A DNA stretch of 63,893 bases, filler included, from Ministeria vibrans ATCC 50519 (lineage: Eukaryota; Protista; Filasterea), in NCBI GenBank assembly GCA_943704425.1. It is 8 parts of 8 records of this genome, joined end to end, with 100 filler letters (N's around TTAATTAATTAA, not from the genome) between each part and the next. Parts side by side here need not be neighbours in the genome. Positions count along the whole stretch, not along the records: positions 24,243 to 43,061 come from CALSCP010000016.1; 7 more parts are not named here. The stretch is one strand, 5' to 3'. The notes under the pieces are model-generated. The model searched no databases, was not told the origin of the DNA, and worked only from the letters and a program-made list of their open reading frames with translations. This document shows positions 26,813-38,800 of the stretch, one piece after another. The position numbers and the translations under genes were made by a program. Position 1 is the stretch's first letter. The number at the start of each line of letters is the position of its first letter.

Positions 26813-29800
26813 ATGGCGCACGTGAGAGCAACGAGTGTGGCTCAGACTAGAAATGAGAATACAGGGATTGCTGCAAGTGCGTGTGAACGGCAACATCGAA
26901 ACGATTGTGTTTGACTCTCTCATTTCAAATAGTGCGCTCGAAGCAAACTGGCGCTGCAAGTGCTCTCGGCGGAGTCCAACCGGTGCGTATCATCTGCCAC
27001 ACTGCAAACATTGTCGTGGCACCAAGGCCGTGGCGGTTGACCAGTGTTGCTAACGTTTTGTTTGGTGGTTTTTTTTTTTCTTTTTTTTTTTTTTTTTTTG
27101 CCTTAGGACTTTGATCTGTCAAGCGAGTACGCCATCATCACGTCTGGCACGTACACGCAGAATGTGTTCACAAGCGGAGGCAGCCAGTGCGGTGTGTCGT
27201 CGCAGACAATCTCGCTGTCCACCACTGAGCTGGGTAAAACGACTCTGGTGGGGGGTCAGCTCACTGTGGTCGTGACCTTCTCCAGCACAGTCCACGCCGG
27301 TCTCAGCGGCTGCACCGACACACTCACCATTAAGCTCACGCAAACCGTCAACGCTGGCTGTGCGAATGGCGCCTCCTGTCTCAGCTTGGGCAACATCGCT
27401 CTTCCCTCTCAAGACCTGTAACACCCTTGTCGCTGTCGTTGTTTTTGCATTTTTGGCTTTTGACCTTTTGACCCTTCTCAATTCTTCTTTTTTTTTAGTC
27501 CGGTCGACATTGCTACTCCCGTTAAGTTTGCATTTGGTAGCGTGTCCGCAACGTATGCGCGCCTCGAGATCACCGCAAACACCGATCTCGATTTAGCCTC
27601 CGAGACGTTTCAACTCAAGGCGGGCTCCTGGACCAAGACCGTCTTTGTGTCCGGCGGCTCCCAGTGTAGCTCGGTTACCACCGTTGTTGACTTAACCCCG
27701 TCCGACATGGCCAGCATGCTCTCCGGCGGCTCCATCACCATTTCTCTCTTGCGCTCCAGCACAGTGAACCTTGGTCTCCTTGGATGCACCGACGACGTCA
27801 GCATGGCCCTGTATCGCTCCAATGTGTGCAGCTGTGTCGGCGCCTACATGGGCGCCACTTGTTCAACTGCCATTCTTCCCACATGCCAGTGTCAGAATGG
27901 CGGAACGTGTACTGATCCAACGCCCATCACCCGTGGCCCCAACTTCAATTTGTACACGGGGAACACACTCACTTTTGCCTTTGGTGCCTACACCTCATGC
28001 TCAGGCGGCGCCGAGCTGGCCTTGACTGCACTCGGGGACTTGGATGGTGAGACGACAGGGACTAACCCAGAGTATGTAGCTCTTACTGCAGGCACGTTTC
28101 ATGCCAATGTGTTTGACACGGGAAACGAGATTCAGTGCCAAGTCTATACGCAAACGCTCTACTACGATCGAAGCACTATCAACACCATGATCACAAGTGG
28201 CTCTCTCACATTTACGGCAACAGCAAGCGCGTTGGTTGGAAGCACGGTGTGCTCAAACTCCTACATGACCATCAAGTTGACGAGTCTTGAGTGTGGCTGT
28301 GCCTGTCCTGCCGGCTACACTGGCTCCCTCTGTCAAACCGAAATCAACGAGTGTGCCTCCAATCCCTGTCAAAACGGCGCTACTTGCACCGACAAACTCG
28401 CGAGCTTTGTGTGCACCTGTGCTCTGGGCTTCTCCGGAACCACGTGCAGCACTAACATCAACGAGTGCGCCTCCAATCCCTGCCTCAACAACGGCCAATG
28501 TAACAACCTCACCGGCAGATTCACCTGCACCTGTGTCATCGGCTATACCGGCACCATCTGCCAGACCAACATCAATGAATGCTCCTCCAATCCCTGCTCG
28601 AATGGTGGTACCTGCTCGGACGGTGTCAACTCGTACCTGTGCAACTGCCGTCCGGGCTACACTGGCTCCCAGTGTCAAACCAACATCAACGAGTGTACCT
28701 CCAATCCCTGTCACAACGGTGCCACTTGCCGTGACGGAGTCAACAGTTTCTTGTGTTCGTGTGTCGCAGGCTACACAGGCACTCTGTGTCAAACCAACGT
28801 CAACGAGTGTGCGTCCAACCCGTGTCAGAATGCTGGTACGTGTGTCGACCAAGTGAACAAATTTCAATGCACTTGCGTCACGGGCTACACCGGCACACAG
28901 TGCCAGACCGACATCAACGAGTGTGCCTCTAATCCCTGCCGCAACGGCGGCACTTGTGCCAATCTTTTGGGTAAGTTCACTTGCAGTTGCGTCACCGGCT
29001 ACACCGGCACACAGTGCCAAACGGACATCAACGAGTGTGCCTCCAATCCCTGTCGCAACGGTGCCACGTGCTCCAACAACATTGGCTCCTACACGTGCAC
29101 CTGTGTGCCGGGCTACACTGGCACTCAGTGTCAGACAGACATTGACGAGTGTCAATCTTGCCCTTGCCAGAACGCTGGTACTTGCAACGACATCCTCAAT
29201 CGCTTTGCCTGCTCTTGTGTGACTGGCTATACGGGGAATCTATGTCAAACGAACGTAGACGAGTGCGCGTCGAATCCCTGTCGAAATGGAGGCACTTGCC
29301 AAGATTCAATCAACGGCTACACTTGCATTTGTGTGCCAGGTTTCTCGGGCACCGCTTGTGCCACCAACAACAACGAGTGCGCCTCCAACCCGTGCTTTAG
29401 CGGTGGCACCTGTGTTGACGGTGTCAATTCGTACACCTGCAACTGCCTGCCGGGCTACCAGGGTGCCCGCTGCGAACTCAACGTCAACGAGTGTCTTTCC
29501 AACCCATGCAGCAACGGAGGCACATGTGCAGATGGTATCAACTCGTTCAAGTGCACCTGTCAACTTGGCTACACAGGAGCAACATGCTCGGTCAACGTCA
29601 ACGAGTGCTCGTCGAACCCCTGCCGCAACCAAGGCACTTGTGTCGACGGCGTCAATGGCTTTGTCTGCAGTTGTGCAGCCGGCTACACTGGTGTCATCTG
29701 CAACGACAATGTCAACGAGTGTGCATCCAACCCGTGCAGAAACACCGCCCAGTGCAAGGATGGTATTGACTCCTACCTCTGCGTCTGTTCCGCGGGATTC

Positions 29801-35800: not shown

Positions 35801-38800
35801 ACATGCTCGGACGCTGTGGGTGGATTCACATGCTTGTGTGCCGTGGGCTTCACGGGTGCAGCGTGCGGACAGGGTGTTGACGAGTGTGTTTCCAATGGGT
35901 GTCTCAATGGCGGTGCGTGTGTTGATGGAGACAACAGCTTCCACTGTGTGTGCCTCGATGGTTTCACCGGACTTCTATGCGAATCCAAAATTGACAAGTG
36001 CGTCTCAAATCCCTGTCTAAATGGCGGAACGTGCTCAGATGCATTTGCATGCATTTGTGCCGCTGGATTCACAGGATTATTTTGCGCTGATTCGCTCTGC
36101 AGCTCAAACCCTTGTCGCAACGGTGGCACCTGTACTGGAGAGTCGGGCTACATGTCGGGCCAGTCGCAGACCATAACGGGCGGTGCCCAAGTGCTGACAT
36201 TCACCTTTTCGGGTGTGCCTCTGAACCGCCCTGCGCAGGTGACAGTCGCAGGCGTGATGGATGTTGGAGCGGCGGACAAGACACTTACGCTCAAGGCAGG
36301 CTCGAGTGTGGACCAACCCATGTTCACCGGAGCAGGCCTCAACGACTGCGAGCCAACGCAACAGCAAGTCGAGTTGTCAGCGGCACAGATTGCTTCGGCA
36401 CGCACCTCCTCTGACGATGTGGTGCTTCAGATTGTGACCAGTCCCACCGTCGAAGTGTGCCCCTCGGGCTTCATCACAGTGTCACTGGATATTGTAGCGG
36501 GCGGCATCAACTGCGAGTGTGCAGCAGACTTTACTGGAGTGCTGTGTCAGACACAGATCGACGAGTGTGCGAGCAACCCTTGTTTCAACGGAGGCCTGTG
36601 CTCCTCCGGCATCCTGTCGTACACGTGTGCGTGCCACACGGGATTCACTGGGGACCGTTGCGAGACCAACATTGACGATTGCACTCCGATGGTGTGTCAG
36701 AATGGCGGTACTTGTGTGGATGGGGAGAACACCTTCACGTGTGTGTGTGCACAAGGCTACTTCGGAGAGAGGTGTGCGAGCAATGCGGACGAGTGTGCCT
36801 CCTCGCCCTGCAAGAACGGAGCAACATGTGCCAATCTTGTGGGTTCGTTCTCGTGCACGTGCGCCGGTGGGTACGAAGGTGTTTTGTGTGGTGAGGAAAT
36901 TGACGAGTGTCTGAGTCAACCATGTGTCAATGGGGGGACTTGTATCGACATTGTGAACGGATTTGTATGCTCTTGCGTGGCCGGATACACCGACGCAACA
37001 TGCTCGAGTGATTTTGATGAGTGTTCGTCGTCGCCTTGTGCGCAAGGATCGACCTGTACGGATTTGGTAAATGGATTTGCTTGCCAGTGCGTACTTGGAA
37101 GATTCGGCGACCTATGCGAGACGTTGGTGGACAACTGTGAGTCATCTCCTTGCGAACAAGGCTCAACATGTCTTTCTGTGGGACTTGATTACACGTGCGC
37201 CTGCATCGCGGGGACCACGGGTGCCCAGTGTGAGTCTGCCATTGACGAGTGCGCCTCGTCTCCATGCATGTTTGGCGGCACTTGCGTCGACCTATCGGAC
37301 GCGTACACTTGCCTGTGTCACTTGGGCTATACTGGCCTTGACTGCGACTCTAACATTGATGAGTGTGCATCGTCGCCCTGTCAGAATGGCGGCGCGTGTG
37401 CCGATCAAGTCGACGGATTCGACTGTACCTGTGTTGCTGGCTACACAGATGTGCTTTGCTCAACCGACATTGACGAGTGCGCCTCCAACGGCTGCTTGAA
37501 CAGCGGCACGTGTGTTGATGGAATTGACGGTTATTCTTGTGTGTGTGTCGCTGGTTTTGTGGGGCTTGCGTGTGAGACGGACGTGGATGACTGTGCTGGC
37601 AATGTGTGTCTCAACGGAGCGACGTGCACAGACCAGGTCAATGGGCGCGTGTGCACCTGTGTCACAGGCTATACAGGCACATTGTGCGAGTCGAACATTG
37701 ACGACTGCGTCACTGAACCGTGTCTCAATGGTGCGACATGCGCTGATGGTGTTGCGACGTATTCGTGCTCTTGTGCACCTGGCTTCACCGGTGTGTTGTG
37801 CGCCGAAAACATTGATGAATGTGCATCGTCGCCTTGCATGAATGGCGCGTCGTGCACCGACAATATCGACGCGTACACGTGTACGTGTGTCGCAGGCTAC
37901 ACGAGCGCGAATTGTGGCCAGGAGATTGACGAGTGTGCTTCAAATCCGTGTGAGAATGGCGGCTCCTGTATTGACATGCTCTTGTCATACACTTGCTCTT
38001 GTACCGTTGCTTACACTGGCACGACGTGTGAATCTCGCATTCCCGACTGTCTGTCGTCACCGTGCGCAAATGGAGGCACCTGCAGTGACAATGGCGACGG
38101 ATTCAGCTGCGTGTGTGCGCTGGGGTACTCGGGTGTGACGTGTGCTGTGGACACGGACGACTGTGCCAGCTCGCCCTGCCATAATCAAGGATCGTGTACC
38201 GATCGACCCAATGCCATTACTTGTACTTGCCGCGCGGGTTTCATGGGTGATTTGTGTGAGACGGATGTCGATGAGTGCGCTTCGTCGCCGTGTGCTGCGG
38301 GAGCAACGTGTGTCAACGGCGCGAACGAGTTTACATGCACTTGCCCCCCCGGTGCCTTTGGAGTGTTTTGTGCCGACGCCTCGGACAACTGTCTCTCGTC
38401 TCCGTGTGTCAATGGCGCGACGTGTCGCTCGTCGAAGAATGTGTACACCTGCTTGTGTGTCGATGGCTATACGGGATTCCAGTGCGAGTCAGACATCGAC
38501 GAGTGCGCATCGTCACCCTGTCAGAATGGCGCGCCATGTGTCAACAATCTCGGCGGCTTTGCGTGCGCGTGTGTGACGGGCTACACCGGTGCTGCATGTG
38601 AAACGAACATTGATGAGTGTGCTGCTATGCCTTGTCTCAATGGAGCAACCTGTGTCGACGCCGTGGCCACCTACTCGTGTACATGCGTAATGGGTTTCAC
38701 TGGAGTGACTTGTGCCACGAACATTGATGATTGTGCATCATCACCATGCACCAACGAGGGCACCTGCTTTGACCTGGTGGATGGATTTACGTGCGACTGC

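Follow-up and report, generated by a model that had tools for sequence, protein, structure and literature searches.

Predicted jelly-roll domains of a bacterial-related family lie inside EGF modules of a giant membrane protein in Ministeria vibrans

We analyzed a 63,893-nucleotide stretch of DNA (filler included) from the filasterean Ministeria vibrans ATCC 50519 (GenBank assembly GCA_943704425.1), hereafter the window, in whose numbering all coordinates are given. The piece under study, positions 24243-43061, comes from record CALSCP010000016.1 and encodes the greater part of a single eukaryotic protein, which exceeds 4,500 residues. This type I membrane protein has a very long stalk of about 95 epidermal growth factor (EGF) modules, in which we found four copies (c0 to c3) of a repeated domain. 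We consider it probable that this protein is an EGF rod on the membrane bearing four jelly-roll copies, three of them nested inside EGF modules, and that these copies belong to an unnamed, bacterial-related family.

Translation showed that three plus-strand EGF modules are interrupted between Cys3 and Cys4, as a first-pass annotation of this DNA had described, by inserts of 109-129 residues (Table 1). The insertion point is constant, right after C-x-N-G-x-x-C (Cys3) and ahead of C-x-C (Cys4, Cys5). The host modules fit EGF-like (PF00008), with C-x-C-x5-C before the insert, C-x-C-x8-C after it and G-[YF]-x-G before Cys6, except that in host EGF 1 just five Cys lie outside the insert. A fourth, N-truncated copy, which the annotation had begun at 27107, is indeed present; it opens directly after a poly-T/AG acceptor and continues into the N-terminal half of the EGF hosting c1, nesting inside an EGF being seen for c1-c3 only. 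The tentative upstream exon of c0 ends before a GT, and the 94-nt intron from there to 27106 preserves the frame. One Cys in that exon could be a partner for the five-Cys host EGF 1. Because the 81-nt intron before c1 holds an in-frame stop, it must be spliced. Given the type I topology set by the transmembrane helix, c0, c1 and c2 are grouped at the membrane-distal N-terminal tip and c3 lies mid-stalk, about two thirds along, which is the arrangement first proposed. The size of about 120 residues given earlier had to be adjusted, since the domain cores span about 105-125 residues; the repeated domain itself is real. No further gap of more than 17 residues between cysteines occurs in the EGF array, the juxtamembrane region excepted.

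All searches and folds were performed on single-exon sequences, with the two parts of the c1 linker, and likewise c0 and its putative upstream exon, kept separate. By BLASTP, c1 aligned with c0 (E 3e-18, 39% identity) and with c2 (E 7e-7), and no significant pairwise match was found between c3 and the other copies. A profile built from c0-c2 scored c3 at 24.8 bits, against 11.7 bits for the best of 2000 shuffles. The copies are therefore homologous, c0-c2 by BLASTP and c3 by profile only. When a four-copy profile was run over all six frames of the piece it returned exactly c0, c1, c2 and c3 and nothing else; the profile detected neither an extra copy in the juxtamembrane stretch 40187-40417 nor the N-terminal third of c0 upstream.

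Over 188 domain instances, the family signature consists of an Asp (94%), a Glu six positions on (89%), a Phe, a Val (93%) and two Cys, the stretch around the Asp reading D-[LF]-x4-E. All signature residues are carried by c0-c2, and in c2 an extra 5-residue loop lies between the conserved D and E; c3 has a Lys in place of the Glu. A C-terminal Tyr conserved at 80% in the family is absent from the window copies. The two internal cysteines pointed out in the first-pass annotation are real and covary, both being present in 123 of the 188 instances, both absent in 59 and the first alone present in 6. This co-occurrence argues for pairing, and we infer one internal disulfide in the domain. The DxD motif suggested at the same time did not hold up, as its second Asp is found in just 65/188 instances and c3 lacks both this residue and the conserved Glu. 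An extra Cys pair in c2 (TSC near the N end and LEC at the C end) could staple the base of the insert.

We modeled c3 and c2, each with its own EGF halves, with AlphaFold2 on a 31-sequence alignment. The two independent models reached a predicted local distance difference test (pLDDT) score of 88.7 and a predicted template modeling (pTM) score of 0.79 for c3, and 85.0 and 0.76 for c2. The elements run in the same order in both: the N-terminal EGF half contributes a short strand, the sandwich has eight strands and a single short helix, and the C-terminal EGF half contributes another short strand. The short strands on either side of the insert were assigned by DSSP to residues 13-15 and 140-142 in c3 and 15-17 and 145-147 in c2. 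The domain is thus predicted to be a beta jelly roll of eight to nine strands with one short helix, and the common strand order of the two models agrees with the jelly-roll beta-sandwich that had been proposed for the insert. Foldseek returned assorted jelly rolls with template modeling scores of only 0.3-0.44. The VIA-align matches were the BcsB carbohydrate-binding domain (9.8; 111 residues aligned, 2.8 A), the Kex2 P domain (9.4), FlhE (8.9), the furin P domain (8.5), carbohydrate-binding module (CBM) families CBM35 (8.3) and CBM36 (7.8), and PNGase domains (8-9), a flat list whose values barely exceed the background reported by the tool. The safe statement is that the models suggest a jelly roll of the galactose-binding-like or CBM type and single out no structural relative.

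No Pfam model at E<=1 and no NCBIfam model at E<=0.1 covered the domain in any copy, nor did any Pfam model lie over the domain in 31 relatives (E<=0.1 or E<=1), in keeping with the earlier view that it is unnamed. A profile search of 1.84 billion representative proteins yielded 103 relatives at E<1e-3, and an iterated search among them identified 184 domain instances, spread over 97 proteins. Each of the 11 relatives that bear an organism name comes from a bacterium, and most of the unnamed rest likewise look bacterial. The named set includes Botrimarina colliarenosi Pla108_40250, proteins from metagenome-assembled genomes (MAGs) of Planctomycetota, Phycisphaerae and Acidobacteriota, and unclassified MAGs; MAG relatives are annotated as "VCBS repeat", "choice-of-anchor D", "Ig-like" or "LRR" (leucine-rich repeat). 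One relative without an organism name is called "subtilisin family serine protease", and one is encoded among ordinary bacterial metabolic genes on an operon-like contig. Partner domains in the bacterial relatives comprise S8 and reprolysin peptidases, HYR, a type IX secretion system sorting tail, FG-GAP, RCC1, PKD, LRR and dockerin. Nearly all of the 103 relatives are giant extracellular proteins of bacteria, and outside the window the family is almost confined to such secreted or surface proteins; the resemblance to bacterial surface-protein domains remarked on at first reading is thereby strongly substantiated. As a reciprocal check, a profile made from bacterial-type members only recognized c2 (63.8 bits), c1 (62.3), c3 (56.4) and c0 (43.1), a result that is not fully independent because those members had first been recruited by the window profile. 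This recognition shows that the inserts are coding rather than intronic.

Instead of a new family, the domain could be a far-diverged member of the galactose-binding-like group (P domain, FlhE, CBM6/35/36 or YkcB_C) that lies beyond the reach of HMMER. Kexin and furin carry a P domain directly after the catalytic domain, and in one relative (P0038, 938 aa) two copies stand directly behind an S8 subtilase catalytic domain; this placement hints at a distant P-domain kinship. Neighbors in a protein atlas included FlhE and P_proprotein clusters, with scores of 0.79, and no atlas match reached 0.9. Another relative (P0001), with nine tandem copies, gave a summed 54.7 bits to YkcB_C (PF24878). That signal is confined to the one protein, where no single stretch passes the gathering score, and YkcB_C had no match in the window copies or the other members examined. 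Furthermore, none of the 31 members and no window copy matched the P-domain, CBM6/35/36 or other models of the group at E<=0.1 or E<=1, and we regard membership in a named family as unlikely. Searching PDB sequences with the domain profiles gave chance antibody light-chain matches only and no sequence relative. Calmodulin and dockerin matches to the PDB from a wider alignment (A2) were set aside, as they come from the flanks of bacterial members and not from the domain.

The nesting itself recurs outside the window. Two short environmental eukaryotic contigs (L002 and L003, 52-54% GC) carry at least five further copies; there, all four copies with a visible N-terminal boundary begin right after C-x-N-G-x-x-C, and all three with a visible C-terminal end are followed by C-x-C. 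Beyond these contigs, no other EGF-nested example was found in the profile search of 1.84 billion proteins or in word-index searches, which were queried with the first large exon (c1-c2) and with an EGF-nested-copy profile and returned only EGF-driven matches or P0043 itself. In an unrelated environmental protein (P0120, a Logan protein of 895 aa), a Kelch-type beta-propeller of about 360 residues occupies the EGF Cys3-Cys4 point within residues ~121-515, ahead of C-E-C-AAGYQGAS-C. Since a different guest sits at the same point, the Cys3-Cys4 hairpin may be a site of repeated insertion in some eukaryotes.

We next consider what the nested domains might do. Because each is placed in the Cys3-Cys4 hairpin loop of an ordinary six-Cys EGF, the sandwich would project sideways from the EGF rod, and the host EGF could still close beneath it. 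Going by the consensus for calcium-binding EGF (cbEGF) modules and by what is generally known of their arrays, the stalk would be a calcium-stiffened rod. The sandwiches may be binding elements for a glycan or protein ligand, with several of them displayed as a group at the tip of the stiff rod. Where they sit, the class of their fold and the settings of the bacterial relatives speak for binding surfaces of this sort, a proposal that we find finely balanced and put forward tentatively; the Ca2+, glycan or prey binding suggested in the first-pass annotation is purely conjectural. The constant insertion position favors one insertion event and later duplication of EGF and sandwich as a unit, a combination that probably arose once.

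It is also conceivable that the sandwiches serve the architecture of the EGF rod, as spacers, as kinks or as knobs for lateral packing, a role that laminin L4 and LF are suspected to play. Those domains have a CBM35-like fold, show no sign of sugar binding and have an enigmatic function (PMC5338690). The mid-stalk position of c3, its missing Glu and the generic nature of the fold matches are in line with such a role. However, the membrane-distal tip, the expected place for a binding head, holds three of the four copies, and the bacterial relatives occur in adhesin-like or enzyme-linked surface proteins, at positions where binding modules or P-type accessory modules are typically found. We therefore think a purely architectural role improbable.

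Several points weigh against the proposal of a membrane-bound EGF rod with nested, bacterial-related jelly rolls. The half-EGF segments reach a pLDDT of just 64-81 in the c2 and c3 models, and the conserved Glu is absent from c3. The N-terminus and signal peptide of the EGF gene were not found in the window, the window protein itself had no match in the protein databases searched, and the closest architectural analogues, laminin L4 and LF, are without a known ligand (PMC5338690). An artefact, with in-frame introns wrongly kept or bacterial DNA mis-assembled into the gene, as the bacterial relatives and the absence of the protein from the databases searched might suggest, is hardly credible, because the inserts are in frame, stop-free and joined to matching EGF halves on both sides within the same exon, their GC content and codon style fit the neighboring exons (true introns here are AT-rich), the same nesting appears on two independent environmental contigs, and a eukaryotic intron directly precedes c1.

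The piece is eukaryotic in character. Its exons contain 55-60% GC, the GT..AG introns between them are short and AT-rich, and the plus strand reads as one gene over 27107-42190 (Table 1). Stop-free EGF-coding stretches cover 27107-27417, 27499-~31361, a stretch from ~31415, 31587-32177, 32257-32967, 33031-33552 and 33641-40417; introns measure about 50-95 nt, with one exception of about 530 nt. A D/N-x-D/N-E/Q calcium-binding-type motif precedes 55 of the 89 EGFs found by a six-Cys pattern scan. Pfam models assign the array to EGF, hEGF and EGF_CA, and intact EGFs beside the host modules score 56.8-121.9 bits. Upstream, a Vps18/Pep3 homologue occupies the minus strand at ~24965-26300 in short exons (PF05131, 73.7 bits for 25433-25804) and is transcribed away from the EGF gene, which places the start of the latter between ~26450 and 27100.

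Table 1. Positions of the domain copies, host EGF halves and other features in the window
Feature	Coordinates	Strand	Remarks
Tentative upstream exon, N-terminal strands of c0	26935..27012	+	read by eye; profile score not significant
Copy c0	27107..27355	+	N-truncated by intron; profile positions 35-118; most N-terminal element seen
N-terminal half, host EGF 1	27359..27379	+	C-ANGAS-C = Cys2..Cys3; Cys1 not seen
Intron, 81 nt	27418..27498	+	GT..AG, phase 2, poly-T tract, in-frame TAA; in linker just before c1
Copy c1	27500..27826	+	nested, host EGF 1
C-terminal half, host EGF 1	27824..27862	+	Cys4-Cys6
N-terminal half, host EGF 2	27884..27910	+	C-Q-C-QNGGT-C
Copy c2	27911..28297	+	nested, host EGF 2
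C-terminal half, host EGF 2	28292..28333	+	from translation
EGF array	28334..40186	+	at least 6 exons; 89 contiguous six-Cys EGF matches
N-terminal half, host EGF 3	36098..36133	+	Pfam EGF profile positions 1-20 of 32, 21.4 bits
Copy c3	36134..36511	+	nested mid-stalk; most divergent copy, conserved E = K
C-terminal half, host EGF 3	36512..36547	+	from translation
Last exon	40952-42190	+	transmembrane helix, RRRRG stop-transfer, Cys-free tail
Transmembrane helix	41207..41275	+	followed by RRRRG and a cytoplasmic tail of ~300 residues without Cys

The juxtamembrane region (40220-40417 and 40952-41200) is Cys-poor, beta-rich and interrupted by the ~530-nt intron, and had no Pfam match at E<=1. 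It ends in AHFSFVGAF, 17 residues ahead of the transmembrane helix, where HFS-F recalls autoproteolytic sites of the ZU5/UPA type. Long (CT)n-type microsatellites, which translate as SLSLSL runs, and (AAT)n-rich introns contrast with the 55-60% GC of the exons; these occur at 24243-24700, 40420-40950 and 42437-43061 and in the introns 31420-31586, 32968-33030 and 33553-33640.

With regard to origin, transfer from bacteria is plausible, since bacteria hold many and varied members of the family and its EGF-nested form is extremely rare, and since the window copies match bacterial ones (up to 40% identity) as closely as they match each other. In a domain tree of 188 instances over 115 columns, 88 of 185 branches were unsupported; the eukaryotic copies do not form one clade, yet no supported branch forbids one. 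As the tree is poorly supported, we state no donor and no direction of transfer. A fuller scenario, in which a eukaryote captured a bacterial jelly roll, wedged it into the EGF Cys3-Cys4 hairpin and duplicated it, thereby re-inventing the laminin LE-L4 arrangement independently and perhaps making use of a docking port open to guest domains in general in this group of organisms, is speculative and we hold it as somewhat doubtful. Proof of such a transfer would make this a clear case of a eukaryotic receptor that reuses an adhesin module from bacteria. The family is widespread yet has no Pfam or NCBIfam name, and most of its instances belong to giant surface proteins of planctomycetes and acidobacteria. 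The window also offers a second natural case of a domain nested in an EGF-type module, after laminin L4, here with a plain six-Cys host and a different guest. These findings bear on the origin of nested domains and on the question whether the EGF hairpin is a privileged insertion site, and the protein could serve as a tractable model for the role of lateral sandwiches on EGF rods.

Compared with the bacterial surface-protein domains, the window copies are alike in length, in the D...E/F/V signature and in the covarying Cys pair. The bacterial copies stand free in tandem arrays or beside peptidases, RCC1, FG-GAP, PKD or dockerin, and, unlike in the window, nesting inside an EGF was never seen among them. 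The nearer architectural parallel is laminin, where L4 interrupts an LE module between its Cys3 and Cys4 without disturbing the LE array around it (PMC5338690). Here too a CBM-type beta-sandwich is predicted between Cys3 and Cys4 with the array left unbroken, but the host is a six-Cys EGF of the hEGF/cbEGF type whereas LE has eight Cys, and the insert is shorter, at about 110 residues, with sequence relatives that are bacterial. The first-pass annotation had equated the insertion point with that of L4 and judged the sequence not to be laminin-like, and both statements stand, as Laminin_B (PF00052) gave no match at E<=1 in a Pfam scan of any copy. Laminin L4 was also not among the top 50 structural matches. 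We conclude that the window modules work like LE-L4 by design principle and are not members of the L4 family. A CBM-type sandwich nested in an EGF-type module is a known kind of arrangement, which the window varies by using a domain family as yet unnamed in curated libraries.

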